Part shown: positions 3,238 to 50,721 of the stretch, piece after piece
Numbering within the stretch: the stretch's first letter is position 1
Layout of the letters: each line of letters opens with the position of its first letter
Assembly: GCA_016748015.1 (NCBI GenBank)
Contig: JAAOMT010000661.1
Coordinates: 62,001 to 126,000 of the forward strand
Source: Geosiphon pyriformis uo1
Taxonomy: Eukaryota; Fungi; Glomeromycota
DNA length: 64,000 bases
Direction: 5' to 3'
Made by a program: the position numbers and the translations under genes
The notes under the pieces: model-generated
The model's database searches: none
What the model was told of the DNA's origin: nothing
Seen by the model: the letters and a program-made list of their open reading frames with translations, nothing else

Positions 3238-3323
3238 ACGCTGTCTAATCTAATTCGAATGTTTTTATCAAGAAAAACTAAACAATTTTTCTCCCCCTAA
3301 AAAAATTGAATAATTTTAATAAG

Positions 3324-4736
3324 ATGCCACCTCTTTTGTCAGAGCAATCGACCAGAGACCATCCTTATCAAAAGTCTTTTAATGATAGTCAATCTTTGTC
3401 GTGCAAGAATAACAATAACAATAACAATAATAACAACAACAACAGCAAAAGCAACATTCCAAATCCTTCAGTTAACATTGTTAAAGCTCACCTTGATACA
3501 ACCGGTGAGAGAGACCAAGTGATAGTTCAGTTAAACGATGGGGTACAAATCGACTTTCCAGTACCAACTTCGAAAGAAATTCGAGATCGTTTTTTTTATC
3601 GTAAGGCCAAATCATCCGATAAACCCGCAAGGCCTCCAAATAAATTTTTCATCTTTCGTACAATGTTTCAAGGCTCCATGGATACTTTTAAGTTACAAGT
3701 TCCCATCGTTTCTGAGCTAGCAAGTCAGGTTTGGAGCAAATCGAGTAAAGAAGTTAAAGAAGTTTTCTCTAAACTTGCAGAAATTGCAAAGAGGGAACAT
3801 GGGGAAATCAATCCTGGCTATGTTTATAAACCACATAGGAAATCAGCACCGGAAAAACAAAATTCTTCAACGTCTAGTGTCCCCTCAAGTGCTCCAGCTT
3901 CTCCAATTTCTCCAACGACCCCATCTCCGTGGTCAGCTCCTTTTCTTCCGATTTCTCTTCCCGATGATTGTTGTTTCTTAAGATATATTTCCTCCGATCA
4001 ATTTGAAAAAATAGAATCACCGACAATGTATTGTTGCGAACAAACCGAAACCTCTACTATTAATTCCTTCGAAGCCCATTATTATGATCAATCGCCAATC
4101 GAATATCAGCAATCATTTGAGAGTTATTTCCCACTCGATTCCGAAGATTATTTTACTAATAGTTTGACCATACCCTTAACAAGTTATGAACCCTATCAGT
4201 CAATATCTTCAGAAGTTTACGAAGCATCAGTTCCATATGATGCGTTAGAGCCTAATTTTGGTTTCGAATTCCCAGCCTCAGTTGCATTTGCCACATATGC
4301 TGACAATTCTACCGAAATACAGACACCAATTTATCCAGCGACTTCGATCAACGAATCTTTTCCAGATTTTGAAAACTATACGACATTTCAAACAGAATGT
4401 CAACAATTAGAACAAGAAGGAAAAATTGAATTAGAGTCACGAATCAAACCAAAAATTTCGAAACGTATGAATATTTCAAAGAAAAAATACCAGCATAATT
4501 CCATAAGCACTGACGTTATAGATTTGGGGGAAGGTCAATTAATTCGATCCATTTCAAATTCACCCAAGACACCCCCAATTGACTTTCACAATACATCGAA
4601 TCCAAAAATAACTAGTCATGATTCTTTCATGTCACTAACGAGAATATTACCCGATTTTCTCGAAACTGAAGAAGTAACTAAAACTGTAAATTCATGGCTT
4701 AAAACAGAAGGGTTTTGTGAAAAAATTAAAAATTAA
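3324..4736 (+). CDS. Divergent MATA_HMG-box transcription factor (HMG-A), about 470 aa, intronless
   Basis: The ORF track starts at TTG 3306; the first ATG is at 3324. HMG box at about 3621-3842: KPARPPNKFFIFR...VSELASQVW...LAEIAKREH...NPGYVYKP. N-terminal poly-N; acidic S/P/Y-rich C-terminus resembling an activation domain. Confidence 0.9.
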   Translation: MPPLLSEQSTRDHPYQKSFNDSQSLSCKNNNNNNNNNNNNSKSNIPNPSVNIVKAHLDTTGERDQVIVQLNDGVQIDFPVPTSKEIRDRFFYRKAKSSDKPARPPNKFFIFRTMFQGSMDTFKLQVPIVSELASQVWSKSSKEVKEVFSKLAEIAKREHGEINPGYVYKPHRKSAPEKQNSSTSSVPSSAPASPISPTTPSPWSAPFLPISLPDDCCFLRYISSDQFEKIESPTMYCCEQTETSTINSFEAHYYDQSPIEYQQSFESYFPLDSEDYFTNSLTIPLTSYEPYQSISSEVYEASVPYDALEPNFGFEFPASVAFATYADNSTEIQTPIYPATSINESFPDFENYTTFQTECQQLEQEGKIELESRIKPKISKRMNISKKKYQHNSISTDVIDLGEGQLIRSISNSPKTPPIDFHNTSNPKITSHDSFMSLTRILPDFLETEEVTKTVNSWLKTEGFCEKIKN

Positions 4737-6049
4737 ACAAATGCCACATTTAAAAACATTAATCAATGGCATTTTTTAGGATAGGAGGAGCTTGTTTAAG
4801 CCATTTTAATATTATCATAAGCTTTTATGAAAATAAGCCAGACTAAATATGATTACTATGATATTTTTGCAATTAGCACTATGTTTTGATATGAACTGGT
4901 GGATTATGAGAAAATTTCAGTTTTCTCGAAAAACACCAAATGTTTCAATTAATTAATTTTTCCATTTAAAGTTTCAACCAATTAAATATTAGAAGAGACA
5001 TTTTATAAAAAAAATATGATGACTTTGATTCAATTGCAAAATTTTTCTGGAAAATTACGTATCCTCAGAAAGGTACAATTGCAAGTGATTGTTATCTAAA
5101 GTTCTGTTGGTGAAGTTTTGTAAAATTGTAGCATTCTGAATTCAATAGCAAAAATTTTCGATAAAGTATATGTTACTTGAAGTTTAAAATGCTATTGCTG
5201 TTGAATTAGGAACTTTGAATTATATTCTGAAGATACTACTTTGTTGTAATATTTAATTACAAAATGAAACAATATATTCAAAAAAAATTCATGTACCTTC
5301 CTATAACATGCATATGAATCAATAACAAACGAGAGCTTATGCATTCACTTTTTGAAAAATGACCTCATAGTCAAACCAATTTGTAATCATTCAGCGATCC
5401 CGTTTTTTGTATATTGTTCTCTTTAATGAGTAGGCATAGGTTGGTAAAAAATGTTCAAAACCGATCATGAGGTCAAAATTTTGCAAAATTCTATTGCCAA
5501 TTGAGAATTTCAAAATATTAGAGTCACCATTAAAACAATCATTTCAATCCGCAGAAATTGTACCCAATGAAAAATGATTTAAGTGGTGAACAATAACGAG
5601 TCCGATCCAAATTCCCAGTTTAATAAGAAGATAATCTGAAAACATCATTAGAAAAGCCGGAACAACTTGGGCAAATGACACCTGTATTTCATATGGCAGC
5701 AAAGATTTTATCACAGTTATTTTTCATCTAGAATTTTGCTACAATTATAATCCCAATTTATGATAATAAAAGCAATAATGGAATAATCCGAACAATGTAG
5801 ATGAAAGTTCTCAAATTTTGCGGAATCTGCCAGATCTATTCATTTGCTTTTGTTAGCAAAATAGGGTTTTAATATTGCTTAACATGGTGTTGTGGTTTTT
5901 GGAATCAATTGTAGTGTTACTTAAATACATAAGAATCAATAATGGTTTTAACTAATTAAGGAAAGTTTTGCGAATCTAAATCAGCAAAAAAAATTATAGC
6001 TATTTACACATAGAAATATTCATTGTTATGCTACAAATTACGTTTTAAC

Positions 6050-9000
6050 AATTGAAAAATTTAATTGAGTTATTTAGAAAATATTTCTAAAAAATATTTG
6101 AAATTAACTAAAAAGTTGTTCATATTTATTATAAAAGAATCTTCAATAAATTGTTTTGCACGTGAAAAATATATTAATTATTATTTTTTAAATTTTTATA
6201 TATTTATTTATATATTATTTGAGTAAAAAAGGGTCAAAAATATAATTGCATATAAGTTCTATATTAGGTGATATTCTTGTCTCATTTAAAAATAAGTTAC
6301 TGCATAAAAATATTTTTTAAGATATTAAATAAATTGAAGAATTACATAAACTAATTTTTTTCATTGGATAATAATTGTAAAGTGTCTTAAATTTTGAATG
6401 ATATAAGTTTTTCAAATCAAGGCAAGTATTAAAAATACAATATTAATTGAGAAAAATTGGTATTTCTAAAATTCAATCAAAAAAGATATTTCACCATAAA
6501 TGAAAAAGAGTTTCTTTAAATCATTGAAATTTAGTTGCAATCCTAAATTTTATAATTATATATCTTAAATAAATTTTTTACTTTCCAAATGTGAAATTTG
6601 TCATTAATCATTAATAAAATTTAATAATAACCTTTTGGTTGTTTTAATAGATTTATTCAAAAGGAAATTTTCGGAAAATATATTTCATGTAGGTAATAAA
6701 AATTGAGTTATTAATAAAAAATGAGAAAAATATAATTTAAAATGAAATTAATATTTTAAACATTATTCAAATTCTGAAAAGAGAATATTATTTATTATCA
6801 TTAAAAATATATCTCGTAAAATATAATCATAAAAAAGTTGAGATATAAAACCAAGATGTTTTTATTGATGTTAATTTACATACTATAATTCTAGCTGTAA
6901 TTGTATAATGCTGATCAAATTAAATAAAAATTTAACCAGATACATATTTTTGTCAATTCTGAACCTAATTATATCTATTGAAATAATTGCAGTCTTTATT
7001 CTTGAGACTTGGATAAAATATAATTATTATTATTATTTAATAAACTTTAATTTAATTTGATATAAAATCAAACAGTTTAACAAATATTTATTTAATAAAA
7101 AAAATCTTAACCAAATTAAAAAATATATTTAAGATTAATAAGCAGTAGTTGGTATATATATATGTTAAAAAAAATATATTTGATTTTTGTTTTTTTGGTA
7201 AAAAAACTTGAACATAATTAATAAATAATATTGTTTTTATTTTTTTTTAATGCTATTTTTCATGTAATATATTTGCAAATATTAAATTTTTTTGTGTGTT
7301 TTGAAAAATTTAAAATTATATTTTATTAATTTAAAATACAGTTTTATTAATCTTATAAAACAAGTAAATAAGTTAATAAAAAACTTAAATACATTTATAT
7401 TAATAAGTTTTGTTTTAAATATAAATTATTAATAGCTCTTTTTAAGCAAAATTAATTAAATAATATAATAATAATAATAATAAATTTAGTTATATTTATT
7501 AATAATTAAACTACTAATAAAAAAATTGATCAAATTAAAAAACTATTAATTATAATAAATAAAACAATAAATAATCTTGGTTTATCTTTAAAAGTTAATA
7601 ATTTATCTTTTTAATTGCAAAACAAAATAATATTGTAAGATAAAATTTAAAAATAAATAATTTGGTATTTATTATTATTAAAACAAAGTTAAAGAATTGT
7701 ATTAAATCTTAAATTATAATAAATTTAAAAAATTAAGTTTTTACTTTTGTTTTAAAGTTGTAATTATTTTAAACAATTAAGTTTTTATTAATTTATTTGT
7801 TATTTAATAATAAGCTTTTAATTATAATTTTAGGTTTTTATATATAGACTTCTTTAATTATTAAATTAAAATAAACTAATTAAAACAGTTAATAATAATT
7901 TGTTTGTAATTTTAAGTAATAATTTCAATAAGAATAACATTAATTATATTTTATTAATAAATTTCTATTAATATTATAACTAAATAAATAAAATATTAAT
8001 TACAAAATTATTTTTTTATATAATTAATAATATAATTATTAATTTAGTTATTAACTTGGTCATTAACTTAATTATTAACTAAATTATTAATATAATTACT
8101 AATTTAATTATTAAAAATATATAAACAAAATTTTTTAAAGTTATAGAAAAAAGCATTTATATTTAAATCTATATTTAAATTAATACTATAATATCAATTT
8201 TTTATTTTTTTTTACTATTTTTTTTTTCTTGATTTGTATAATTAATATTTAATATTAAATTCTAAAAGTGTTAATATAAAATATAGAATTATATTAGTGT
8301 ATTATCTTTTATTAATAATATAAACTATCTTTTTACTTTCAAATTTTCTTGTTATCTTTGAAAAAAATAGCAATTGTAATATTTATGAGACTAATTTTAC
8401 ATATAAAATCTTTACTAATTTAATTTATTTATTAATTAAATTATTCTTTTATTAATTTTTAAAGATTTGGTATTTAAAAATTTAGTTAATTTATTTTTAT
8501 TTTTTACTTATAAATATTTTTATAATAAATAAAAATATTAGAGCTTATTATTAATTAATATAAATTCAAGATATTATAATTGTTTAGAATTATTTTTAGT
8601 TTATTTTATTACAATTAATAAAATTTAATATTGGTTTTTTATTTTTTTAATAAGTTAACAATTTATAATAAAAATAATTTTTACAATATAATTTGTTTTT
8701 TATCAAGCTAATATAATATTAAATTATTTTATTATAATAAATTATTTGTTATAATATTAAATTATGTTTTACAATAATCAAATTATTTTTGTGTTTTTTT
8801 TTAGCTTTTAAACTAACAATAATTTCTAAAATAATAAAAAATAAAATTAAAAAATAATATTCTGCAAATAAATATAATTAAAAACAATTAATTTAAGCAA
8901 ATAAAAATACAATTATGCTAATTATATTTGGTATTAAAAGAATAATTTGCAAAAATACTTGTTAAAAATAATAATAAAAAATTTAATTTATAAATTATTA

Positions 9001-12000
9001 GCATAGAAAATAATTTTATTTGAATAAAAAAATAAAAATAAAAAATTATTTAATTTATTTTAATTAGAATCTTTTTAATTATAGTTAAAATTATTCTAAG
9101 TTGTTTTTTTATAAGCTAAAATTATTTATATATATACATTTTTTTATTTTATAATATAGTTTTTAAAAGCTTGCAATTTTTTATATTATTTTATAATTGC
9201 TAATTATAATTTGTTATTATATGTTATTTTATATTATTGTTAATTATTTTGTGTTATTATTAGTTTTATTTTATTGTATATTATTTTGTATTATTATATA
9301 TTATTATATTTTTTTTATATAATAACAGATAAATTTAAAAAACTAAAAAAAATAAGAATCTAAATATTATATAAGTTTTTATTTATAAAATTATGTGTAT
9401 AATAATAATATTTAATAAAATTACAAATTTAAGAATTTTTTTAACAATAACAATTATTAAACAACATATATTGTTACATATATAATTATTAACTATAATG
9501 TATATATAAATATAAAAACTATTTCAAAATTTGAAAAAAATAAAAAATTGCAAACAAAATATTTAAAACAAAAAAAATATTGTTATTCTCATTTGTTTTT
9601 AAGCAAAAATTAGCTTAATAAATTTTATTAAAAACACAAAAAATAAAACCAGCAAAAAACCAAAACTAAATTATTATATTAAGCTAAAAAATTTTAATTG
9701 GTTATTAAAAATATGTAGTATTTAAAAACTCAATTTTAAAAAGCAAATATAAAAAAATTATTTAAAGCATTTATGTAATAAAACATAATTAAAATAATTT
9801 ATTAGAATTATTGTAAAAAAATATTTTCAAACAATATAATAACTTTTATTATTTGTTTAATACTATAATAAAAACAAAGTCAGATGATAAATTAATTAAT
9901 TTTAATTAGAAAACATATAATATAAAATATTAAAAAACGTGTTTTAAAAAACATAAATAATAAATATTAATTATAAACATATAAAAAAATTATAAAGATA
10001 GTATAACTTAAATGTTAATAATAAGTATTAAAATATTATTATTATTATTTTACAATAAAAAATTAATATATTAGCTTAAAAATATAATATAATATAAAAA
10101 TACCAGAAATTTTAAAAATATTTGAAAGAATTTTTAAAACTTTAAAAATACCAAAAAATTTTAAAATATTAAAAATGTTAAGAATATTAAAAATAAATAA
10201 ATTATATTATTAGAAATAAATACATAATTATAATAATAAAAAAGGAAAAAAAATTCAAAAACTTATTGAAAAATCTAAATTATTTTAATAAAAACTATTT
10301 TGTTATTTAAAAAACCTATAAATTATATTTATTCTTATTAATACTTATTTTATTTAAATAGCTTCTAAAATAACAGATATTAAAAACATTATAATTAAAT
10401 TCTATTATACTAAATTAAAACTTTTAATTATAATTATTAATAAAATTTTATTTCTATTTTTTTATTGTTTAAATTTTTGGTTTTATTAAATTAATTTATT
10501 AAAAAAAATAACTATTAAAATTATAATATTAAGAATAATCTAATAAAAAAATAAAAAGCTAAAACATAAAATTAAATAATAAAAAATAAATAATTTATCA
10601 AAAAGATAATAAACACCAAAATAAACCAGTTATTATAAAAAAGTAAAACACCAAATATTATTAATTATCTATTTATTAAATTTTTGTTTTTTGTACAAAA
10701 AATTTTAAATAAAAATTTTCAGATTTATTAAAGTTTTTAAATCTTATCAAAAATTAACAACACTAAATTATAAAATATAATTCAACAAGTAACTATTTAT
10801 GTACAGAAAGAACATAAGTTATACTTAATTTAAAATTTTATATGATTGTATTTTTTTAAGTAGTGGTTGAACTGTACTCATTAAATACAATAAAAAAAAA
10901 TAATTCAATATATTTATTTATAATAATAAGTATTTAAAGTATAAAAAAAGACATATAAAAAAAATTAGCTATTTACGATAAAACTATAATAAAAAATTAG
11001 TTTAATATAAAATTAATATTTTTTTAAGCTAAAAAATTTGTATTTTATATTAAATTTACATATTATATTAAATTGCCTAATTAATATATTATTTTTTTAG
11101 AAATTAATAATTTAAATAATTAAATTTAAATAAACAAATTTAAAACTTTAATTATATATTAATAATATTAATTATAATCATAATTAACTTAATTAAAACA
11201 AATTAATTAATTATATTTTTTAATAATTATTTTTGAACAATAATTACAAATTTAAAATATTAAATTATATAAATAAGAATATAAAAAAATTTTGAAACAT
11301 AATAAAGTATGTTATTATTAACCTATATATATTTAATTTAAAAGTAAAAACTTTTTGTCTCTTTAATTTTATAATTATAATTAAAACAAAAAATAAAAAG
11401 ACTGTACTTAATATTTTTTCTAAAATATTTAATAAAGTTTTAATTAAAAAAGTTTTTTTTGTTGTAAAAACTGCTAAACAAAGTACTTTAAAAGTTTTTT
11501 CTCTAAGTAATAATAATAAAAAGCTATTTTTAATAGTCATTAAAGTTTTTTACCAGTTAAGATTCTCTCAAAAAGACATATTTAAATTAGTTTTAGTATT
11601 GTTTCTATTTTTAATAAAAATGAAAACAATTATTTGCTTTTGCTATTATTATATTAAATATTTTGTAATTTTAAATAAAATTTTGAATAGAATTTTTATT
11701 GTATTATTCAGCATATTATCTAAAATAAGCCAATATTATATTGTCAAATATAATATTTTTTAGCAAATTTTTGCCAGTTTTAAAAACAAAACAACAGTTT
11801 TTTATTAGATTATTTGTTTTTAAAAACTAGATTAACTAAATAGAAACTAATTTATTATTACTTTTTTTGGTTTTTGGTATTGCTATTAGTGGTATTTGGG
11901 AAATTATAACTAGTTATTAAATATTTGCTGAATAAATAATTTCTATTTTGTTTAGTACTATTTTTAAAATTAAATTGGCTTATGTTAAAGCTTTTTTTCA

Positions 12001-15000
12001 ATTTATATATGGTTTTTTAAATGTAAAATTAGTTGTAAAAAACAATATAAAGCTTTTTTATATGAAATTTGCTTCTTAATAATCTCTAGAAACTGTATTT
12101 TTGATTAAACTTGAAAGCTTTATTTATTTGACTACTTTTAAGATTGCCAAATTTTTGGTGATTTTTGAATTAGATTTTTTTTTGGTTGCTGTTATATTGT
12201 ATAATATGCTTTTGGGTGTATTTGTTACTAATATTAAAATAGTACTTGATATGTTTAAAAAAGTTACTTATATTGTACTAAAGTCTGTTAATATTTGGCA
12301 AAACATGATTATTTACTTTAAAAATTTAAATACTATTGTATCTGCTTTGAATTATTGGTCAGATTTATTAGATAAAAATAGTATTAAAATCTTTTTTTTA
12401 ATAAATCAAAATAAGATTATTCTGTTTTATGATATGTTTAAGATCAAGTTTGTCAATTTTTTCTTTGGTTGTATTGTTTATAAAATTAATAATATAATTT
12501 TTTAAGTTGGTAATCAGACTTGTTTTATTCTTAGTTTTTTCTGGTTATATTTGGTTTACAAAATAATTTAGATTTTATTATTATTAATACTTTAAAAAAA
12601 TATTATATTTAATGAGAAATTTTTAGATGCTAATGCTGTTTTAGATATTAAAGCTTAAATTATTTAACTGTTAATTGTAAAGTGTTTTTATCTTTTTTTT
12701 TAAAACTTTCAAGACTTTTATGCTTTATTTTATTAGTATTAAATCTTATGTTAAAACTACTGCTTTTGTATTTTCTAGTTTTTCAATTGGTTTTGCTTTT
12801 TTTAATAATATAATAACTGATATTTCTGTGGTTTTTTCTTGGTTGGCTTCTTTGAAATCTGATTTGGTTAATTTTTTTTAATTAAATCTATTAATAAGCC
12901 AGTTAGATTTTTGGTTACTGTATTTAAACAATTTATTAATAATAATTTGGTTTTAAGTAATGTATTTGGTTTTAGAGTTAATAAAATTTTAGAATATATA
13001 AATATCTTTAGTAAAGTAGCTAATAAGTTGAAATAGAAGATAGTTGCTTTAAAAATTAAATATAATTATAAAACATTGATATATCTGGTTTTTACATGAA
13101 TTTATTTGTAATTAATAATAATATGTTTTTTAATTTAATATTACTATAAGAATATGAACTTATTAATATTAAAATTAATGCTTTAAAAACGGCTAAATAG
13201 CTGGTTGAATTGATTAATAATAATACTATATTGTTTAAAATTGTTTAAAAAATGTTTTTTTTTGAGTAAGTTTTCTTCTAAAATATTAATATAATATAAT
13301 CTAAACTGGCTTAAATAATTAATTATATATAAAAAGTATATAAATTTTATTTAGTTTTGAAATACTTAATTTGTTTCTAATTTCTAAATAGTAATTAGAC
13401 TGTATTTATTAGACGCATAATGAAAAAAAATCAAAATAAATAGTTATATTTATTTATATTTCTTTAATGTATTTTTTTATTTTTTATTGCTAGTTATTTA
13501 ATTAATTAAATATAATAATATAAACTTTTATGCATAATTTTAATAATAATTTTTATAATATATATTGTAATTTTTTATTTTTAAAAACAAACAATATTTT
13601 AAATTTTTTTAATTCAAGTATTTAATATTTAAAATATAAAATTTAATATTAAAACTTAATAATAAGTTAAAAAAATTTTGTTTATGTAATTGATTTTTAA
13701 AAAATTAAATAGTTAAAAAATTTAAAAAATAGTAAATATAAAATCAATATTATTAATATTAAGTTAGTTTTGTTTAAAATAAAAAAAATAAACAAATTTT
13801 TAAATTTTTATATAATTTTTATAATTGAAAAATTCAGAATCAGATTAATTATTATAAAGCACATAAATAATTTTGTTTGTAATAAAAATTATATAATAAG
13901 AATATTTATTTTAAAAAGTGTAAATAAATTAATTAATTATAAAAAAAGACTTAATTTTAAGTTTAACTTGATTAAGTTTAAGATAAATAAAATTTTAGAA
14001 AAGTAAATTAAAAAACAAATAATATTAATAAAATTTCTGCTTTATAATACAGTTAATATATATTCATTAAAACATATTAATAATAAAACTATATAATTAA
14101 AAAAATATTTTAGTTTATAGCTTTAATTAAAACTTTTAAAAAAAAATTTTTGTTTATAATAACTTGTTTTAATTTTCTGTTTTTACAATAGATTTAATAA
14201 TTAAAAATGCTTTAAAAAAATATAAAAAGTTGTAATTAATATTAAAAAACATATATAAAATTTATAATTTATTAAAACATATTATTTAAAAAAGAATTTA
14301 ATTAAAATTAAGTTATATAAAAGATCTATTAAGTTTTTTAACATATTTATAATAATAAAAAAATTATAATTATTTTCATTAATCAAAAAAAATTTTTTTT
14401 TTAGTAATAATAGCTTACTTATTTTTTGTTGTAAAAAAAACTATATAAATATCTTATTAATTGAGATTTATTTAAATTTAATTTAAAAGAAATATATTCA
14501 AATATCAAATTTTTTGCCAATATAATATTAAAAAAACTATTGTAAATAAGCAGTTTTTTTTATTTTGTCTTAGTTGTTTTGTAGTTTATTATTAATTATA
14601 AAACTTTAATTAATTTATATTTAAAAAATATATATAACAGATAAAATTAATTGTTAATTTTTTATTATAATTTAAGATATTAAAATTACTTAAAAATTTA
14701 ATATTATGTTTATAAATTAATTATTAATTCATTAAAATATGTATTTTAGTTAAAAGTTTTTATTATTAAAAAAGATTTAAAAAACGAGTTTTAAACAGTT
14801 TAAGCTGGCTTTAGAGTTTGTTAAAAAAGATAATTTGATTAATAAAGTATTAATTATAATATTTAATTTAAGTGTTTAAATTGTGTAAAATTTTTGGTTA
14901 AAATTAAATTAACGAATATTTATTTAAATAAAATTAAAATGTTTATTAATAATTTTATTAAAAAATTAAATTTATTTAAGATGGTTAAAAATATGCTAAT

Positions 15001-15635
15001 TTATTTTTTATATTTGATTTATAAATTAAATATTAAAATTTATAGTATTATAATATTATGTTTTTTATTTTTGCTAAATTATAAATAATTATGCTAATAT
15101 TTAACTGTATTTTAGTAATAAATAAATAATATTATTAATACAAATAACCAAATATTATTAAATATATACAAAATAAAATCTGCTTTATTTAAACTTAATT
15201 TTTATAGTAAATATTAAATTAAAAAACACTATATTTATAATTTAATTAAAAATTAAATAATAAAACTAACTTTTTGATTATATTATAATGTTTAATTTTC
15301 GCTTTTTATTTAAGTTAAAAAAATATTTTTAATGGCTAATAGCCAAATAATTTTTGAAAATTTTTTGGTATTTTGTTTAGAAATTATATAAATTTGTAAA
15401 TTTTGTTTAATAAAAATATTACAAAAAAACTTTTAATAATATTACACAAAAATATTTATTATCTGAATTATTTTAATATAAAATATATTAATATATAATA
15501 AAATAAAAAAATTTAATTACTTATTTTTATATAAATAAAATACTATCAATATTAAATATATTAATAAATAAATAATTTTATTAAATTAATTTTTTTGTAA
15601 TACTATTATGTTTTATTATTTTTATATAATTATAA
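6050..15635. repeat. Extremely AT-rich block of decayed (hypermutated) repeats
   Basis: GC is roughly 10% by eye and CpG is almost absent. No credible genes. Contains a recognisable LINE ORF1 relic and eroded short tandem periodicities. Boundaries are approximate. Confidence 0.75.
11540..13300 (+). pseudogene. Hypermutated relic of a LINE ORF1 (RRM region), related to but distinct from the intact element
   Basis: ORF 12101..12505 (VILYNMLLGV...IWQNMIIYFKNLNTIVSALNYWSDLLDKNSIKI) aligns without gaps to the ORF1 in this window (VIVKEIPVDL...LWQKALVEYESFEMADLVAIRWSVLMGKDSVHV). WQ-to-WS spacing is identical. The relic has the same G/T-rich sense-strand skew. Outer limits are estimated from that skew. 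Confidence 0.75.
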
Positions 15636-15772
15636 TTTTTTTTTTATTAACCCATTTAATGAGTGCAGCCCAATCACTATCTAGTACATAGAACCAAACT
15701 AAGAGGCTCAAACTAAATGCGACTCATGCACTTTCTACATGTGGCTAGCCACTCAGACCAGACAATGCAACA

Positions 15773-22398: not shown

Positions 22399-22529
22399 AA
22401 AGGGGAATGTTTGAAGAAATAACTGGAGAAAGGTGAAGGAGAAAGGGAAAAGGAAGGCTATTTCAGTGATGACTTAAAGCTTTTGTTGTGATCAGGGGAT
22501 CAACGAAAGAAGAGTTTTTTTTTTTTTCC

Positions 22530-24900: not shown

Positions 24901-25157
24901 ATTTTTTCAGGAATAATTACAGTGAAATTTTATTTCATTCACCGAACTTTGATCATTGGGAAAATTATGAAATGAACAATTTGAGGTTCATTTTGCTTAA
25001 TACATGTACAAACAGTTTCTAAGTGTTATATGAAACTTTTTACGCGCAAAATATCTTAGTGTCAGCTTAAAATAATATGAAAGCAAAAAAATGGGGAAGC
25101 TAAAATCTTTCACGCATTCGATATTTAGTAGCCCAAAAAAGTAAAAATCCAAAGTTC

Positions 25158-25973: not shown

Positions 25974-26121
25974 CTCAAAAACAGTGTCTTAGCCTAAAAG
26001 CCAAAGAAATTATAACCCCAAAATAGATAGTATATCAACAAATGATGTCATTGGTTAATCGATAAGCAGAGTATTTTAATTTCATTCTTTGGTTCTTAAG
26101 TATTCAATTTTTAAACCGACA
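25974..26121. promoter_or_regulatory. Compact bidirectional promoter shared by the HAD gene and SLA2
   Basis: Divergent ATGs are 148 bp apart. Contains TGATGTCA (CRE-like, 26043-26050) overlapping ATTGG (CCAAT reversed, 26050-26054). Confidence 0.65.
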
Positions 26122-36300: not shown

Positions 36301-36576
36301 AAAATAAAAATTCCAAATAAGGTAGCCGATGAAATAAATTTACAATTAAACTCAAATATTATTGACCATTGGAAAAATGGAAAAGAAAAACCTTCGTTTT
36401 AATTTTAAACATAAGAAAAATTGTTTAAGCATAAAAAATTTATCTTTTTTTGAGATTCAATTAGTTTTAAAATTTTCTAATTATTATTTAGATTATTGTA
36501 ATAGAAAATGAAGCCATGAATATTTTTTAAAGTTTAATCAAAAATAACTTTGATATTTTTCAAATTTGATTTCAAT

Positions 36577-36591
36577 TATTATTATTATTAC

Positions 36592-36677
<86 letters not shown>
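36577..36677. repeat. (ATT)n microsatellite, about 33 units
   Basis: Directly visible. Confidence 0.95.
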
Positions 36678-36678
<1 letters not shown>

Positions 36679-39600: not shown

Positions 39601-40327
39601 AAACAGAACCCATTCATAACATGCATCTCATTAAAAAATAAAGGAGACTGCTTTCAAGGCTGCTGCAATGTGAATTATGCTATATAGAATTTGAAGAAAA
39701 AAATGAGAGTGAATAAATTAAATCTTTGTCATGGAACTCTTCATTAATTTATTTGGTAACCTTTTTTTTTTATTTTCTTTGTGTCCAAAAATTTCTCAAT
39801 TAAATCCCGCATACTCAAATTAAGTAAATTGGGTTTTCAAAGCTTTTTTTTTTCACTTGAAATTAATTTATTAAAACTGCTTCAAGGTATTTTTGCTTTG
39901 TCCTAATATGAATGAATGAATTAATGAACAAGAAGTTCATTAGTTGCTTTAAATCGAGAAAATCTTTTTATTGAAAAACCACGCCCTCATAGTAAAAAAG
40001 TTTAACAAGAAATAGATCATAGAGAACAAGGGTTTTTACTCGGTGATTCACTCTATGCCAAAACATTTTCAAAAGTAATTTTCTTTGCCTATATGAATAA
40101 AAACTTAAAAATCTTCCATTTACCGAAAAGATTTTCATCTATAGTTCTTTAACCTATTGTACATTGTTAACAAGTACTCCGAGTTATACGCAGATCTTTC
40201 CCAAATTGATGATTGACAGGTCAAAAGTAATGCGCGTGGAGATGCATTTCGGCTAAAATTGAACAATGGTCGTCAATTCAATGCAACTTTAAAATACTTT
40301 GAATAGGTGTAACAATAATTGTCAAGT

Positions 40328-40408
40328 GGTTAATAATAAATGTCAGTTTCCTTTTGGTTAATAATAAATGTCAGTTTCCTTTTATTTAATAATAAATGTC
40401 AGTTTCCT
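40328..40408. repeat. Three tandem copies of an approximately 28 bp unit, core TAATAATAAATGTCAGTTTCCT
   Basis: Directly visible in lines 40321-40381. Confidence 0.9.
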
Positions 40409-43400
40409 ATTGACCCAATGAAAAACACAATATACCTTTTTCGAGACTTACAAAAAACCTAGCTAATAAATTATTCCAATAAATTTAATTGTAAAAACAT
40501 ATTTTTTTAATACAGAATATGCAACGATAATTACTTGCATTTTCTCTCTTTTGAAAAGCCTTTTTCAATAAAAATAATAATTTAACCAAAAACATTTTGC
40601 AAATATTATTGGAATCTCTTGTTAGATTTTTGTGCATGTTGAAATTTAAAATAGTTTAATAAATAATTCAAGAATCAATTAATAAATTTAAAAAAATTAT
40701 GAACAATAAAAACTAGGATTAAAATATAGTAAAGGTTTTAATTATAAATTTTTAAAAAAATAATTTTTTACAAACAACATTATAGAAAAATGGTTTTTGA
40801 AAAATATTTCTTACAAAGTTAAAATAATAATTTTTGTCATTTTTGTCATTTTGGTCAATAGAGAATGTAATTTTTAAAAACAATTTAGGTAAATTAGTTT
40901 TTCAAGCCTCCGATGTCTTTTCAAAGGAAAATTAATCCAAAAATTTTGAATTTAAATATTTCTATACAATCTTGGATTTGTTAACAAATCATATTTTAAA
41001 GCAGCATTATACTCATTATATTATTTAACTTCTAATGTCCAATTTTAATAAAAGAAAATATAAAAACTTTTTTTTTATCAATAATATTTTTGAATTGGAA
41101 TAATATTATCACATACAGAGATTTTGATTATTTAAAAATTTAAATTTAAATGCTTAACCCCTTTCTTCATTAATAATTAATAGGCTAAATTATTAAAAAG
41201 CAATTACAAAGCCTAAAGATGAATTCAAAGGAATAAAAAAAACATCGCTCCTTAAAATCTTTGAAAAAAATTAAATCCTTTGATTAAAACTAAATACAGT
41301 AAAAAATTTTACATTGCATTTTTGTAATAATTTTCGTCAAAAAAGCTATTAAATTTTGTAAATAAATTCCCAAACTCTTTGATCAGTGCCATAAGACTAT
41401 CTTATTAGTCATAAAAATAATTCCGAATATATGCAATGCTATGCATTTGAACTAAAGGCCGATCGTGAACAATGGTGGAAAATTTTAAATTGTGGCGCGT
41501 GAAAATCTCATAATCTAATCAATTTACTATAACCGATGATAAATTTTGTCCGAATTTCACGACAAATTTTTTGGAAAAAAATCCAATTATAATATCCAAC
41601 CGATAAATATCTTTCTTTCTTTCTTTCTTTCTTTCGAATTTTTTATTCTCTTAACCTTTGTTCAACGATATTGTCCTGAATTAGCTTTTATGGAAGCCGA
41701 GGAGTTGAAAGGGATAAGTGACTTTCATTTTTATTTTATCCTGAATATTTCATGCAATAATTATTAATTTGAAATGTGTGAGAATCGGAAAAAATTTCAA
41801 ACGGAATTAAGTTATTCAGTAAGCATTTGAAATTTAAAATATTTGTTAAAGAACTGGATTTGTGGAGCATTTATTTGGTATCTACATGATCAAGAAAATG
41901 TAACAATTAATGTTAATATGGCTGAAAATTTTTTGTTTACATTATTGCAAAGAAGTAATAATTCTTTTATTTGTACATAAAGTTTTCTTCGAATAATCAG
42001 CGATGTTGTAGTATGTAGAAAATAAACATTAATTACCAAATATTAGTAGTTTTAAAGTGACACCCTTATTTATTAAAGAATACTTATGCTTCGAAGCTTA
42101 AATTTTGCAAAGAATAAATTTTTTTTTTGATTGGAATGTAAGAAGGAACAGCAAAATATTTTTATTTGAAAATTATATCATTGAATTGTCATTTTGATTA
42201 GTTCATTCAAAAAACGCCAATTTTTTTTTTGAAATAGTTCAAAATAGTCGTGAAACTTGAAAACGAAATTAATTGCATGAGAATATTCGAATAATATTTT
42301 TTGATTTTATATTTTCAAAAAGAAATAATTTTAAACTAGTTTTGAAAAGGTAATTATTATTTATTTATAAAATTTAATAATATCTGTAAAAACTTATTTT
42401 GGTTAATGGGTTAAGGCTTCTTGGGCTTTGAAATTTGAATTATGTTCATAATTATCTAAAAATCTTTGTTCAAAAACTCTAATAAATTTTGTCATTGATC
42501 TGTTTATTTATAAACCTTTATTTAAAAATTTCTAAACCAAATAAAGGTATACTACTAACACATATTTTTAATCACAACTTATAAAAAACTTTTCAAAACA
42601 AAATCATAGTAACATAAAAATATAATTTAAATTTGTAAAAGAAAATAAATTGTCATTTATGGGTAAAATGAATCCTAAACTTGTCATAAATAAATTCTTT
42701 TACTATGACTGACCGTAATTTCGTGCATATTTAAATTACCAAAAGTTTGTAATTTTTACTATGGAATGCATTTACCTAAATTAGATTCCTCTTTTTCCTA
42801 ACCTATTGTCCATTTGAAACAATCTAGCTCTTTTTTCATACAATAGGTTTGATTATCAATGATACGAATACTGTAGTACATGATACGACAGTGTTATACA
42901 CTCGCGCCATTGTTTTCCAGCCAATCAATATTTATGGCACATATTCTGACCTGGATTTTTGAACCAATTTTGAAAACGATTTAATAGCCAAAAGATATAC
43001 ATCCATTTTTCCCAAAAGAGACTCAATCTTTGGTTAGAAACAGCAAACCTTTATTTTTCTACAAAGTATAGAATGAGAAATGGGTAAAATATTCATATTT
43101 TTAATTATTTTAATTGATTAAAAATTCCTTTAAATTACTATTTTATTAAAGTCTCTTAATTTTTTAAAAAATTTATATTTTTAATTATTATATATTTTTT
43201 TTCATTCAAGACTTTCTCTAGTATTAAGGAAAATTATTTGTGAGAAATTAAAAAATATTAAATTATTTTTCATAGAATTTTTAAACTAGTAACATATAAT
43301 ACCTTTGAATCTTTTGGTAAAATTAATATAATATTTTGTTAAAATGGGAAAATTCCAGGGTATCGAATAAAAATTGATATCTTTTTTCAAAAAAAAATTT

Positions 43401-44824
43401 TAACCAAAAAAGCTAATCCTAAATAAGATAACAAAAGAAACACATTTTCAAGATGACCTCCAAAGGTTATAAATTTTATATTACATGCATTAGATTCTAT
43501 TGCTTCCATTTTGAAACACGCGAATGCTGACGCGTACTCTTTGAATAATTGAAGCAATTGTCCTCGAGGATTACCGATGACGAAATTGTACCAACATATT
43601 TTTGAATGAAAAACGATTTTTCTTATCAAAGTACTTTAATCCAATTTTGGTTATTATCTAAACTCCACACAAAATTTCTAAAAAGCTGTGTTCGAATCTT
43701 TTTTGTCAATGAATAAGAAAATCATTTGAATTTGAAATTGGTACTCATTTATTTATTTATTTTTTTAACGGAGTCCGGGGGAAAAATGAAGTATTGAAAG
43801 AAAAATATTGTGGTAAAAAAGAGTCTTGGAATATAAAAAACATTTTTATAATTAATTTAGACACGACAAAATATACCATAAAAAATTCATACAGTTTGTT
43901 TACTATTGTGATAGTAACATGCAAGTTGATGCGTCTAAATTGCAATTTTAAATTTTAAAGTCTCTGATAACACAAACACAAAGATTTTCAATTCAAATTT
44001 TGTAAAATTGATAGAGCCGTGAATAGTTGTTTGAAAAAGAGTTCAATGAATGCCAAGGAGCATAGTATTTTTTTAAAAAGGGTTTTTCCTCGAGATCTGT
44101 GTTTGATTCAATCATCATTCAAGCTAGTATTTTAATGCCTTCGGGTGAAAAGAATTAAAGTTTGGAAGACGAGATACATTTTAAAATAAAATTGTTTCAG
44201 AAAAATTCCAAGAAATTGTTGCAAAAAACGGCCGATGAGTTTAGAATTTTTTTTACCTTGGCAAAAAACCAAGTGAAAAGATTTTAAGAGTAAAGATGTA
44301 ACCTTTTGAAAAAGCAATTAAGAATGTTTGAAACTTAAAATTTTACAATTAAAAAAAAAAAAAGTTTCATCAACAATTTTGTTTAACATTATTCGAAAAC
44401 ATAGCCAAGATCAGAGCGTCTAAACTTAAAAATTTTTCCAAAGGATTCTTGCATTTTGTCGGGATACAAATAAATTTAATTTTCGTGACACAGAAAAACC
44501 ATTACAAAGTTTTTTTTCCTAATTTGGCCATCGAAATTTTAACATTTTAATTAGATAAAAAAAAAACAAAAAAAAAACTGTTGCCTTAATGATCATTAGA
44601 ATCGGATCGTTCCATTTTTTTCAAACTTCCGATCAAAGCGCCCGAACTTTATGGTTTCATTTTTTATTTTACCAATGCGTTATCAAAAACCAAATTTTAT
44701 ATTCCGAATGTTATTTCTAAGAAAAATGTAAAAAATCATTTAATTTTTGAAACATCTAAAGAATTTTATTTCTCGTAACCCGAAATCTAATTAAAATATT
44801 CATGAATAAACGGGACTGAATATA

Positions 44825-44886
44825 TTATGTTATTTTATATTATGCTATGTTATGTTATGTTATATTATGTTATGTTATGTTATGTT
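44825..44886. repeat. (TATGT/TATAT)n pentanucleotide repeat
   Basis: Directly visible, imperfect. Confidence 0.85.
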
Positions 44887-45458
44887 AAAAAAATCTTTTT
44901 AATTCACTTTTAAAAAATTAATGTCACAAGTGTCAAAGCTTACAAAATTTTTCATCTAGACCCTTTTTCCTAGACTCGATTGAAATTAATGATTTAATAA
45001 TTAGTTCATTTGTAGTATAATTTTACTAAATCAATAAAATTAAAAAAAGTAATCCATTACCACTTTTTTTTTTAGCTAATTACAATTAGACGAATTAAAA
45101 CTTTCCAGTCGGCATATTAACTTTTTAATTCTGCATATCATATTAGGATTGTTTATCACATGATTTTATTCCTAATTTTAATTGGCTAATTCACACACAA
45201 ATATCACATGAAACTCTTTTCCCATTGATTATTAGACAATTTTCCCTTGTGTTCTTTCGACAGTAATCATTGTTGTCTTTGATATTGTTCGGTCTTAAAT
45301 TGTAATCTGATTTGATTAACATGAACCAAGGATGTTGAAATTTGAAAATTATTCATTATTATTCAAAGAAAGCATATAAAACTACTTATTCGGATACAAA
45401 TTTGGTGATGAAGGGTTTTAAAAGCTTAACATTGTCAAAAAAGACTCGCTGTTATAAT

Positions 45459-45480
45459 CACACACACACACCCACACACC

Positions 45481-45517
<37 letters not shown>

Positions 45518-45527
45518 ACACACACAC
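45459..45527. repeat. (CA)n microsatellite
   Basis: Directly visible with interruptions; gives the HT repeats in spurious ORF 45342..45566. Confidence 0.95.
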
Positions 45528-47640
45528 CAGTTACGTGACTTGAAGGCATGCATGGTATGTTTGTAGATTTTTAAAAAAAGTACATTTTTCCCCCGCGAAA
45601 AAACAGCAAGCTTTGCTTTATTTTCTGCTACAGCTCTGAAAATTTTACCCCACCCAAATTCTTTTTTTTAGAAAAATTCCCGTCTCACGCTCTCAGGAAT
45701 TACATTGACGCACTCCACAGACAACCCAATCCCACAGAAGTTTCATATAATATTACGGAAGAAATTCATGCGATCATTAACGATTACTGATTTACCCTTT
45801 TAATAATGTATATGCATCTAATGATCGAAATGCAAATCATCAAACCAAAAAAAGTAGACCTCGAAAAATAACGACTTAAAACACGAATAGATCAATTGTT
45901 AAATAATTGCTTTAATACTCGGAAAATTTAAATTCGGAAAAAAAATAAAAAAATTATTAATTCATCCTTTTTTTTTTTTTTTTTTTTTTTAATGTTGCTT
46001 AAAAAGTATGAAAAAGACGATTTCTTTCCCAAAATCATGAAAATCTTTTAAATGAAAAAATATTTTTAAAACAAAGGAAGAAAAATTCTCATTGTTTTCT
46101 CATAATTCCATACCAACTTTTGGAAGGTTAATTAATATTTTTTTTGCCTTTTAATAATCAATTTTTTTTTCAAATCTTGACTATTTTTAATAAATGTTAC
46201 AAAGGGTTTTAACTATCAATTGTGAGGTAAAAGCCTTCATCAAGGACTCATGATCTATTGAAGGAATTTGAAATGACTCTTAAACCGGGGAAGAAATGAT
46301 TATCTTTTTCCTTTTTGGCTCAATAAACCCATTATACTAAGCTATTAACTCTCAAAAGTTATCGATTTGATTACAAGGGATTCTACCATATATCACCTTA
46401 TATGGGAATTTAATTAATGGCGTCATTTTATAATTGTGTACCAAAAAAAAAACATGGATATAATTATTTACTATAATTGAAAATATGAAAATTGGTAAAA
46501 AAAAATAATTGTCAAATTGTACAAAGCTTTTAAGCTAGTTATTAATAGTTCGAGTTCTCGACTCATCGAGATTTTTTTTCTTAATAAAAAATATTTGGCA
46601 AGAAAAAGATTATCAAATTATTGAATTGCATAATTATGCTTTTAGAAGTAAAATCAAAAGTCAGAAAAGACATATTTGAATGTTGTTACTTGATGATGTC
46701 CAAATACGTTTAATATGGAAATTTCTGTTGAATTCAACATTTGTGCACTTGTACAATTTGTAAATGGTTGCAAAAGTTTAATTTTACCATTCTTGGAAAT
46801 GAGAGTACATATTGTATCAAATTTCCATATTAAAAATAACCTAATATTGATCACAGCTTCTTATTTCAATTGTATATACACATTTATTCATTTATTTACT
46901 AAAGATTATCAAGTCTTTGTATCAAGACCTCTTTGTAAGCTCTGTAAAAATAATATTTTTAATTAAAGATGGCTGCTTTCAAGATTTATGCAGTCTTATT
47001 ATTTTGATTCTCGAAAAGAATAATTATAGGCGTACATTCATTATATTTTAGAGACAAAAATTTTTTTAATGCATTTTGGCGCTCGCGGGAGGGGAGGGGG
47101 TTTTCTTTTCATGATTTAATGATACAGTTACCTATAATTTAAAAAGTATCATTATATCAGGTTAGGAATTAATAATAAATTCATGGCTCAATTTCCATAC
47201 TAAACTGATGTGATTCACCCCTCAATAAAAAGCCCGAGAGATTAGATATGCGCTGTCATATATCGGGAATTTGAACATGAATGATCGTTATAGTTTTATT
47301 TTTTAATTGTATTAGAGTAATGGGGGGGGGGCGAGGGTATCTCGTCAATGTAAAGTCACAAGTGTCAAAATAAATTTTATCTTTTAAAATAATAACCATT
47401 TATTATTCTATTATTAACTTCTTGGACTCGCTAGCCTGTTAAGAAAATTTTTAGCCTTTAATATATTGAGATATGAATAAATTAAATACTAAGTTTAGGT
47501 TTGAAGGATGCTTTTCTTGGAAATTTCTTAAGTATTAATTTTAAATATAACCTCATGAACCAATTATTAAGGTTAGGCTTTAATTGTGAATGGTCTATAT
47601 GGAAACGGGGTGTCCTACTAAGGCTATAATTTTCTTTTTC

Positions 47641-47673
<33 letters not shown>
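47641..47673. repeat. (TAA)n microsatellite
   Basis: Directly visible. Confidence 0.9.
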
Positions 47674-47674
<1 letters not shown>

Positions 47675-49137
47675 TGAACAAATAGTTTTGGGATCTACTA
47701 AAAATTAAGAGTGAATATGCATCACAAGAAATTATAAATTTTATCTCCTTCATCAAAAAACATATTTTTATGAATTCTAAATGCGCAGATAATTTCAAAG
47801 ACTAACACCAAATTCATAATTCAAAAAACTGTTTCTAGCCAAATTAGTTTTGAAATAAATAATTTCGAAAATTCCTTAATAATTGATGTGTTCGATATGC
47901 TTCCTTTTCGGCATTTATCATTAAAAGACTGTGAACCAAAATCAAAAAAGAATTTTGGTAAATCTTTTAAATCTCGTTCATCTTCTTTAAAAAAAAAAAA
48001 AAATTTCCTAGAAATGGAAGACAAGAGAAAAAGAATTTATTGAAAAAAAAAATATTAGTTCATCTCTCATATTACAAGAGATTATAGATTGTCCTGTAAA
48101 AAAAAAATTTTTTTTTTGTAAATATATTAATTTATTTTTTGGGGAGTAAAGACTAAAAGGAAAAAAAAAATCAAAAGTGGATTGGAAAATTGTAATAGGT
48201 TTACTTTAATTTACTAATATTTTGGTTTACAAATTTAATGTAGAATTTATCTTTAAAAAAAAAATTTAAATAGTTTTAAAGGCAAAAATAAAGATATAAT
48301 TAGTATTAACTAAGAAGTCGATAAAAGGCCATTCTATTCAAGATTTCTGATAAACCATAATTTATGAGAAACGATAAATATCCCATGCATAAAAACCAAC
48401 CACACCCAAAGAAAAGTTTATTAATGCATTAAATTTTTCAGTTCCACAAATTAAAAAAAGTTTCTTATATATATATTTTTATTTTTCTTACTTTCTTTTA
48501 CCTTTCAATAATAGTAAACTAAAAAAAACCCCGCCTTTTAATTGACGTAAAATGATATATAATTAAAATAAAAGGGAAAAATCTTCATAGCAGAAAGAAA
48601 ATCAAATATTAAGAAATCGGTTTAACTTATTACTATTATTATTATTATAAAAAAAAATTTTTTTTTTAGTTTAACAGAAGTCTATAAAAAATATATATAT
48701 ATTATTTCAAATTCCTGTTTTCTTTAGTTGTCGAATATTTGTCAGACAAGGCAAGTAGCTTTTTATTATATACAAGTCATTATAATTTTTAAAATAACCT
48801 AATATAAAAATGATCATTTCTATTTCAACATGAAATTTGTACTACCATACCAAGCTCATAAAAAGAAAAGCTTTTCGCACTTCCATTTGCAAAAAGAAAT
48901 TCTTTAATAATTTTTTCTCTGGCAGACTCCGCGACACCTTTTTCATTAGCATCATCGTTGTCGTCATCATTATAATCATCATAACACACCTTGGTAAACT
49001 CAATATTACTGTGTGTTATTGGACCACTTTCTTAAGCTTGTCTCTTCCTTCTTATTTTCACACACCCCTCATTCACATTCTCTCTTTCATCTTGTTCAGA
49101 GCCTATCATTATATTAGTGTAAAAAGAAATTGACAAA

Positions 49138-50721
49138 ATGAAAATGTCACAATTTTCTTTGTCAACAATGTTAAACACAACGTCGGAGTCAACTAATGAT
49201 AATAGTAAAAATAATAACAAATCTTTAGCATCGAATAAAAATTCGTTGGATTCTACCTCGTGTTCTTCTAATATAAAGGCCCCTACTTTTGAAATAATAT
49301 CTACTGATAAACTTATAAGTTTATATGAACAAAAAAGGGGAACTTCTTACTTCATTCCAGAAGGATTCGAACCGGTTTTGATTCCAACCAATCCAAATAC
49401 AAATAATAATAATAACAATAATAATCCTAATCCTAATCCTAATCCTAATCCTAATCATCAACATCATCATGCCAACTTGAATAATTCTCCACTTTTTGTA
49501 CAGCCAACAGCAGCTAACCTTATGTTACTAAATGGTAGTACAAAGAAATCAAATGGTCGACGCAGCACTAGCCTAAAGAGTAGCCAGCAACAATTGCTTT
49601 TACAACAACAACATCAACAACTACTCCTTCAATATCAACATCAACAATTTCAATTTCAACAACAACTGCTACGTCAACATCCTCATTTTCACCATCCATA
49701 TCATCGATCACTACCTGCGACCGTTGTAAATTCGGATGTAAAGTTTCCTTCTTTAGTGCTAACTCAAGCTAAGGGAACGACTTCGCGGGGCGGTTCAATC
49801 CCTAAAGCTCAAAAGCCAAAGAAGCCACCGAGACCACCAAATGCATTCATATTGTACCGAAGATCAAAACAACATCAAATCGTTGCTGCCAACGAAGGAA
49901 TTTCAAATAATGACGTTTCAAAGCAAGTAGGAGAAATGTGGCATAAAGCGAGTAGCGAAGAAAAATTACATTACCAACAATTAGCGGACGCTGCAAAATT
50001 GGATCATACGAAAAAATATCCAGAGTACAAATATCGACCTAGACGACCTCACGAGAAACGGAGACGAACCAAGAGACCTTCTAATGCCTCATCAACTTCT
50101 AATCTTGCAAAAGAAGCCACGAAAACAATGGCAGAAGCAACAACGACAACAACAAAAAATTCGTCTAAAAAAGCTGAAAACAATTCTTCGGAAATACAAA
50201 CTTTTTATAATGATGATTGTAAAGTTATTGAATCACAACGTCGTGATTCACTAGAAACAGTCTGTAGTAGTATCGAAGAAAGTACAGCATTTGACTATTC
50301 TTACGACGAAAATTTATCTCGACGTGGTTCAGTCGCTTCGTCCACCACTGAAAATGAAATATCAAATCATCCTTCAATAGTATATAATTATACTACTGCC
50401 ACATCATCCTCCCCCCTCACCATATCTCCAACCTTAGAACACACAGAGGTCGCACTTTCTCCCGTGAATAGCACTATTAATGATTCTCACCATCAAGTTT
50501 GTTACGAACCAACATTTAGTCAATACGCGTTATGTTCAATGTTGGAAGGTGTTTCACCAGATGGTTCTGATCCTGAATTAATTCCATTTGATTTCCTTGA
50601 TATGGGTTCATTTAATCCTCAAAATTCAACTGCCTCCGAAGCAGCTTACTCTACCAGTGAATCCCTTGATTATCTACTAGGATCTTTTGATTTGTCAACG
50701 TTAATCTCATCTAACGAGTAA
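49138..50721 (+). CDS. MATA_HMG/SOX/ROX1-like HMG-box transcription factor (HMG-B), 527 aa, intronless
   Basis: Canonical sequence-specific HMG box at about 49822-50049: KPPRPPNAFILYRR...ISNNDVSKQVGEMW...EEKLHYQQLAD...HTKKYPEYKYRPRR. Followed by a basic NLS-like tail. Poly-N, NP and Q/H-rich N-terminal region; acidic S/T-rich C-terminus. Confidence 0.94.
   Translation: MKMSQFSLSTMLNTTSESTNDNSKNNNKSLASNKNSLDSTSCSSNIKAPTFEIISTDKLISLYEQKRGTSYFIPEGFEPVLIPTNPNTNNNNNNNNPNPNPNPNPNHQHHHANLNNSPLFVQPTAANLMLLNGSTKKSNGRRSTSLKSSQQQLLLQQQHQQLLLQYQHQQFQFQQQLLRQHPHFHHPYHRSLPATVVNSDVKFPSLVLTQAKGTTSRGGSIPKAQKPKKPPRPPNAFILYRRSKQHQIVAANEGISNNDVSKQVGEMWHKASSEEKLHYQQLADAAKLDHTKKYPEYKYRPRRPHEKRRRTKRPSNASSTSNLAKEATKTMAEATTTTTKNSSKKAENNSSEIQTFYNDDCKVIESQRRDSLETVCSSIEESTAFDYSYDENLSRRGSVASSTTENEISNHPSIVYNYTTATSSSPLTISPTLEHTEVALSPVNSTINDSHHQVCYEPTFSQYALCSMLEGVSPDGSDPELIPFDFLDMGSFNPQNSTASEAAYSTSESLDYLLGSFDLSTLISSNE

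Follow-up and report, generated by a model that had tools for sequence, protein, structure and literature searches.

In ascomycetes the mating-type (MAT) locus is flanked by SLA2 (PMC3116813), in the order APN2 – MAT1-1/MAT1-2 – SLA2, and in Mucorales the sex locus, which carries one of two alternative high-mobility-group (HMG) alleles (tptA – sexM/sexP – rnhA), is flanked by TPT transporter and RNA helicase genes (PMC3116813, PMC7490403). For arbuscular mycorrhizal fungi (AMF), a putative MAT locus of HD2 and HD1-like homeodomain (HD) genes has been presented (Ropars et al. 2016, cited in PMC7490403), which according to a preprint has been retained by early-branching lineages, Geosiphon among them. 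Mateus et al. 2020 (PMC7490403) furthermore described other HMG loci of Rhizophagus irregularis, with an EamA transporter and Sec21 as flanks, as well as a five-gene tandem array. Here we analyse a locus of Geosiphon pyriformis (Archaeosporales, Glomeromycotina) in which two dissimilar HMG genes, called HMG-A and HMG-B below, lie on either side of SLA2 in a stretch of 64,000 nucleotides (C343:62001-126000; hereafter the window, in whose numbering positions are given unless a contig is named) of contig C343, which measures 190,410 bp in a genome of 128 Mb and 792 contigs. We consider it likely that HMG-A, SLA2 and HMG-B form an ancient conserved block with two MATA-class HMG factors, which are probably sexual or developmental regulators rather than alternative mating-type alleles. 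The full-text literature search returned no paper linking SLA2 with HMG genes in Glomeromycotina, and an SLA2-linked HMG block in this subphylum is apparently new to the literature searched.

Four host genes were found in the window with Pfam, the list of open reading frames (ORFs), a scan for peaks of GC content and an exon map, namely HMG-A, a HAD hydrolase gene, SLA2 and HMG-B. The preliminary description of this DNA had named the same two HMG genes as bracketing SLA2 and the HAD gene, with no further host gene in the window, and Pfam, ORF list and exon map agree with it. The distance to SLA2 is 21.4 kb for HMG-A on the upstream side and 18.8 kb for HMG-B on the downstream side, without any other conserved host gene in between; the start of HMG-A at 3324 is indeed an ATG codon, and SLA2 has its ATG at 26122. 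The features concerned are as follows.

3324..4736, plus strand: HMG-A, single exon, 470 aa, divergent HMG box, probably of MATA type (Pfam, orthologues, tree)
25158..25973, minus strand: HAD-superfamily hydrolase, 271 aa (Pfam Hydrolase_6 and Hydrolase_like)
25974..26121, no strand: divergent intergenic region between the HAD gene and SLA2, 148 bp (direct sequence reading)
26122..30378, plus strand: SLA2 (ANTH, coiled coil, I/LWEQ), multi-exon, intact (Pfam, exon map against Dissophora SLA2)
30379..49137, no strand: spacer between SLA2 and HMG-B, 18.8 kb, gene-free, mostly unique (ORF list, GC-peak scan, tRNA and Rfam scans)
49138..50721, plus strand: HMG-B, single exon, 527 aa, canonical MATA-type (MAT1-2-1-like) box at residues 225-311

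Since the spacer 30379-49137 holds zero ORFs of 90 aa or longer, zero tRNA and zero Rfam matches and, apart from a CA repeat and a single short duplicate, no GC peak, HMG-B is the next gene after SLA2, in the same orientation, as had been described before.

The locus resembles the ascomycete MAT locus in that a MATA-class gene with a MAT1-2-1-like box stands beside SLA2; the direct linkage of a MATA_HMG gene to SLA2, which characterises the ascomycete type, is thus present. Moreover, the second, dissimilar HMG gene across SLA2 recalls the fused or homothallic MAT loci of ascomycetes. Unlike in these loci, SLA2 lies between the HMG genes rather than flanking them, HMG and SLA2 are separated by 14-21 kb instead of a few kb, no APN2 or alpha-box gene was found, and no idiomorphs are known. 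As regards the APN2 flank, none of the 11 GRF-finger matches of the genome lies on C343, and the window's only Exo_endo_phos domain belongs to a long interspersed nuclear element (LINE). At C584:147000-158100 and C340:121200-132100, an HMG box is accompanied at a distance of approximately 9.8 kb by an ORF of some 400 aa that has a GRF finger at its N-terminus; these ORFs were rejected as APN2 candidates, having only this finger and no nuclease domain. These two GRF/HMG pairs show the same spacing, like a duplicated unit.

With the Mucoralean sex locus the window shares an HMG gene in a conserved neighbourhood of a Mucoromycota fungus, but it holds two HMG genes in cis instead of one of two alternative alleles, and the flanks differ, with neither TPT transporter nor RNA helicase genes in the window. 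The putative AMF MAT locus is comparable as a candidate sex-related locus of the same fungi and differs in being homeodomain-based. Because C343 is devoid of homeodomain genes (0 of 11 genome matches), this HD-type locus must lie elsewhere in the Geosiphon genome.

The arrangement seen in the window recurs in Diversispora eburnea, where contig CAJVPK010000010.1 has the order ArgSS/GT49 (-), SPC22 (+), HMG-A (+), SLA2 (+), eIF3c (+), HMG-B (+), with eIF3c 2.1 kb upstream of HMG-B:

76791-77713, plus strand: HMG-A orthologue
79292-83708, plus strand: SLA2
92424-95750, plus strand: eIF3c
97874-99226, plus strand: HMG-B orthologue

Order and orientation of HMG-A, SLA2 and HMG-B are identical in both fungi, and as this order is kept in a distant order, the SLA2–HMG linkage is inherited and not a product of chance. 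The split between Archaeosporales and Diversisporales is hundreds of millions of years old. Geosiphon ArgSS and eIF3c are situated on other contigs (C658 and C572, respectively), so that only the trio of HMG-A, SLA2 and HMG-B stayed linked. In Ambispora gerdemannii, a gap of 2.8 kb separates SLA2 (-) from the HMG-A orthologue (+), in an orientation inverted relative to the window. Two more HMG boxes were found near this Ambispora pair, one on each side; they were rejected as orthologues of the HMG genes on C343, the similarity being confined to the box. Overall, the gaps in related species amount to 1.6-2.8 kb between HMG-A and SLA2 and to 14 kb between SLA2 and HMG-B, and both HMG genes are in cis in every genome showing the block. 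Furthermore, a Cetraspora contig has ArgSS next to HMG-A as in Diversispora and ends 2.9 kb after HMG-A. As in the window, hardly any called gene was found over 10 kb in either direction from the HMG-B orthologue of A. gerdemannii and from that of Rhizophagus clarus. All protein-context look-ups span ±10 kb, and for Rhizophagus, Gigaspora and Paraglomus the surroundings of SLA2 were viewed within this range and from the HMG side only.

HMG-B possesses a box scoring 72.5 bits against Pfam HMG_box, over the threshold, with SRY and SOX as the closest solved structures. Its box is 47% identical to MAT1-2-1 of Histoplasma capsulatum (87 aa, E 5e-26), the cluster of which is among the best HMG-B matches outside Glomeromycotina, and it is nearer to this protein than to any other HMG box on C343 (at most 35%). 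The orthologues of HMG-B are named MATA-HMG or MAT1-2-1-like; with a box over the Pfam threshold and mating-type HMG proteins as the nearest named relatives, HMG-B is of the MATA type. In the tree the orthologues form one clade spanning Glomeromycotina (SH-aLRT 99%, 18 rows), with boxes about 72-80% identical to that of HMG-B. The partial HMG tree, taken from sequences similar to HMG-B and with Histoplasma MAT1-2-1 and its relatives as the only MAT references, left one node unresolved, at which the ascomycete MAT1-2-1 proteins meet Pneumocystis, Coemansia and two orthogroups of AMF; with this node and with sequences picked by similarity, it speaks for membership in the MATA class and for no specific sister relation.

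Two further copies of HMG-B were found in Geosiphon. A full-length paralogue, 45% identical, is located on C633, and a broken, inverted partial copy lies outside the window at C343:158091-160099 (-), which corresponds to 96-98 kb in window numbering. The partial copy has upstream DNA 83-89% identical to its source (about 47553-49010 of the window) and residues 7-204 at 67-68% identity with four stop codons, and no HMG box is attached to it.

HMG-A is a divergent HMG box with a conserved N-terminal extension. Its box reaches 23.2 bits against Pfam HMG_box in the ORF 3306-4736, just below the cut-off of 25.4; all seven aligned orthologues match HMG_box (best E 2.9e-6), and HMG-A itself is 32% identical to MAT1-2-1 over 90 aa (E 6e-8). 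That HMG-A could be an alpha-box protein was rejected, as neither it nor its orthologues have a MAT_Alpha1 match at E up to 1. The conserved core comprises approximately residues 45-165, with 65 invariant columns in seven species of four orders, and is 72% identical to the Diversispora orthologue over 125 aa. The orthologues of HMG-A, approximately one for each species, fall into a single clade with members from Archaeosporales, Paraglomerales, Diversisporales, Entrophospora and Glomerales; the orthogroup tree matches the species tree, with a duplication in Rhizophagus and Glomus. The top matches of both HMG-A and HMG-B come from Ambispora. Geosiphon has an HMG-A paralogue on a long branch, encoded on C639 with 100% identity to KAG9290123.1, a protein deposited for G. 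pyriformis; this match and those to Ambispora identify the genome as G. pyriformis, in line with the Glomeromycotina of the preliminary description. This paralogue belongs to a second HMG pair, being 4.6 kb from another HMG-box ORF (C639:1354063-1360031).

Both genes can be compared with the expanded AMF MATA-HMG family (Riley et al. 2014, cited in PMC7490403): the R. irregularis orthologues, relatives of HMG-A among them, have been deposited as MATA-HMG. C343 is also, like the tandem HMG arrays of R. irregularis (PMC7490403), an HMG-rich cluster. Neither gene falls into a lineage-specific expansion; placement of both in such expansions had been among the refuting outcomes listed in the preliminary description. 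Unlike recent copies of the family, both represent subphylum-wide orthogroups with roughly one member for each species and, outside Glomerales, have a conserved place by SLA2.

The identity of SLA2 follows from its N-terminal ANTH (E 5.5e-27) and C-terminal I/LWEQ (E 7.2e-62) domains, the combination of SLA2 / Hip1R / End4, with matching exons between 26782 and 30378 (Pfam). In tblastn with SLA2 of Dissophora (Mortierellomycotina), residues 3-293, 430-557 and 634-1050 of the query were covered unbroken. The gene is single-copy in the Geosiphon genome, with no alternative haplotig. Compared exon by exon rather than as a joined protein, SLA2 is 79-84% identical to Diversispora and Ambispora and 55-84% to SLA2 of other fungi; protein-cluster look-ups, for which the C-terminal exon served in the representative search, had an agaricomycete protein as the best full-length representative and found SLA2 of Mortierellomycotina, Zoopagomycota, a chytrid and yeast and none from Glomeromycotina. 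The DNA-binding regions of the HMG genes are almost as conserved as SLA2. The HAD gene stands head-to-head with SLA2 at a distance of 148 bp; it had no tblastn match in any related locus examined and is not the neighbour of SLA2 in the other species examined.

Taken as an ancient block, the locus may be explained as follows. Because the trio or the HMG-A–SLA2 linkage is found in D. eburnea, A. gerdemannii and Geosiphon, the sequence HMG-A, SLA2, HMG-B would go back to an ancestor shared by Archaeosporales and Diversisporales, near the base of Glomeromycotina. In Geosiphon the block would have expanded from some 22 kb to 47 kb by acquisition of the HAD gene together with a young LINE and AT-rich repeats of old age. 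Judging from their sequences, both HMG genes are predicted to encode sequence-specific, DNA-bending transcription factors of the MATA HMG class, whose DNA-binding regions appear to be under strong purifying selection. By analogy with non-idiomorphic MATA-HMG factors in other fungi, their role would be that of conserved regulators, in a programme that is probably sexual or developmental, and their linkage may have been kept either by constraint or by slow local rearrangement. Since both are in cis on one haplotype, HMG-A and HMG-B do not behave as alternative mating-type alleles in the genomes seen.

Several observations weigh against this explanation. The conservation of the block rests on three genomes of two orders. 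HMG-A–SLA2 adjacency has been lost in Glomerales: in Funneliformis geosporum and R. clarus the HMG-A orthologue has a DUF7102 gene on one side and F-box/LON genes on the other, and neither HMG-A copy of R. irregularis has SLA2 within 10 kb. In Paraglomus brasilianum, SLA2 was not seen in the 6.9 kb preceding the HMG-A orthologue or in the 10 kb following it. In A. gerdemannii and R. clarus, SLA2 was likewise not seen within 10 kb of the HMG-B orthologue, a reach shorter than the 14-19 kb that separate the two genes elsewhere.

The first alternative is that the block is a true or relic mating-type or sex-determining region, homologous to the ascomycete MAT–SLA2 region and older than the divergence of Mucoromycota from Dikarya; a pair of HMG genes in cis would then stand for a fused or homothallic-like locus. 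In ascomycetes SLA2 is the classic neighbour of MAT (PMC3116813), HMG-B is MAT1-2-1-like, order and orientation were kept across two orders while other neighbours were lost, and a role of HMG-box loci in AMF mating responses has been raised as a possibility (PMC7490403). Notwithstanding these points, we regard this alternative as unlikely. Outside Glomeromycotina, no HMG box accompanies SLA2 in Dissophora ornata (Mortierellomycotina) over the 4 kb before and the 10 kb after the gene, and a survey of the chytrid Sla2/Apn2 scaffolds found no HMG or alpha-box gene (PMC6572847); the Mucoralean sex locus has its own flanks, and several independent losses would be required. The outgroup checks made do not support this alternative. 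Within the subphylum, HMG-A is away from SLA2 in Glomerales, C343 has neither an APN2-type GRF finger nor a homeodomain gene, the two genes are in cis wherever they were seen, at least seven HMG genes share their contig, and the tree does not separate MAT1-2-1, Pneumocystis, Coemansia and the two AMF orthogroups from each other.

Sequence variation points in the same direction, as the DNA-binding regions are very conserved and the R. irregularis orthologues nearly uniform. Within clusters drawn at 90% identity, the deposited HMG-B orthologue sequences of R. irregularis are 99.6-100% identical and its HMG-A-like sequences 97-99%, with the genes in both cases unlinked to SLA2 in this species; the remaining comparison covers a single genotype each of Geosiphon, Ambispora and Diversispora. 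The preliminary description had proposed an SLA2-HMG linkage predating Ascomycota, which finds no support in the neighbours of Dissophora SLA2, the chytrid scaffolds (PMC6572847), the relocation of HMG-A in Glomerales or the absence of a GRF-finger gene from C343. Its suggestion that SLA2 neighbourhoods be compared yielded HMG linkage in Diversispora and Ambispora, none within the reach covered in Dissophora, and an HMG-A placed elsewhere in Glomerales. The fuller version of this proposal, according to which a remnant or working HMG sex-determining region was linked to SLA2 already in the ancestor of Mucoromycota and Dikarya, is the same locus as ascomycete MAT–SLA2, and was joined by the AMF HD locus later or in parallel, appears to us slightly more doubtful still.

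It is also conceivable, and in our estimation improbable, that the linkage has been conserved for a non-sexual reason, for instance with long-range regulatory elements of the HMG genes lying in or around SLA2 as a bystander. In three species HMG-B is without called genes for most of the at least 10 kb around it, and in the local duplication on C343 its upstream region was copied along with the N-terminal part, both of which would suit such elements. The eIF3c gene of D. eburnea is placed just 2.1 kb upstream of HMG-B, however, Ambispora has HMG-A and SLA2 in inverted orientation, and no non-coding sequence conserved between species was found.

There remains the number of HMG genes as such. The six-frame search, the counts of which are lower bounds, revealed at least 121 HMG boxes in the genome. 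At least seven HMG-box genes are carried on C343, six of them above the Pfam cut-off, with boxes at contig positions 29401, 111123 (HMG-B), 126170, 166855, 175551 and 186491, and HMG-A as the seventh; a custom profile gave four further, weaker candidates. The boxes on C343 are mutually very divergent (at most 35% identity within the box), and one of the genes begins 170 bp beyond the end of the window. The chance of adjacency, which the preliminary description had proposed to compute from HMG gene density, was estimated as the share of the genome lying between two HMG boxes no more than 50 kb apart, which is 0.38-0.45%; with only about 0.4% of the genome so placed, a bracket around a given gene such as SLA2 is unlikely, although this figure alone is not decisive. 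Chance placement of two members of an expanded and clustered MATA-HMG family around SLA2, a caveat of the preliminary description to which these numbers of divergent boxes lend some colour, is very improbable given that expectation and contradicted by synteny, since D. eburnea has SLA2 between the same two orthologues, both from ancient single-copy-type orthogroups, with order and orientation unchanged, and HMG-A adjoins it in Ambispora.

The gap between HMG-A and SLA2 is filled with a LINE and old AT-rich repeats, the two main features being:

4800..15700, no strand: AT-rich DNA (10-16% GC), old degenerate dispersed repeats (composition, genome matches)
15773..22398, minus strand: full-length LINE with three open ORFs (Pfam, genome copies)

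The LINE encodes an RRM-like ORF1, an endonuclease and an RNase H-bearing ORF (Pfam), is the only coding feature of the window besides the host genes, and has a GC content of 42-44% vs 10-16% in the flanking DNA. At least 20 full-length copies with 90-93% identity were counted in the genome (from 5190 first-look candidates). The AT-rich stretches 4800-15700 and 22400-24900 gave 125 genome matches at 65-85% identity (from 7736 first-look candidates), and their most copied part is a unit of 2-2.8 kb at about 11.0-13.7 kb of the window. In the SLA2–HMG-B spacer, a non-coding stretch of 0.98 kb (37287-38264), free of ORFs and Rfam matches, duplicates C343:51950-52871 at 88% identity; the latter is located 10 kb before the window start. 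The local build-up of repeats that had been noted earlier therefore holds for the HMG-A–SLA2 gap, with its LINE and old repeats, and not for the mostly unique spacer between SLA2 and HMG-B. Close to the window start, positions 122-422 consist of an (ACTC)n microsatellite with roughly 75 perfect copies, because of which a spurious ORF of 151 aa appears there; a run of N (assembly gap) is present at 52070-52250, approximately 1.4 kb downstream of HMG-B.

The block touches on two open questions, namely the nature of the ancestral fungal sex locus and the use of HMG genes by AMF beside the homeodomain locus. It provides a small, concrete locus in which idiomorphs, suppression of recombination and mating-related expression can be looked for in Geosiphon, Ambispora and Diversispora. 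If it is merely a conserved regulator block, it would still single out two ancient members from the very large MATA-HMG family of AMF.

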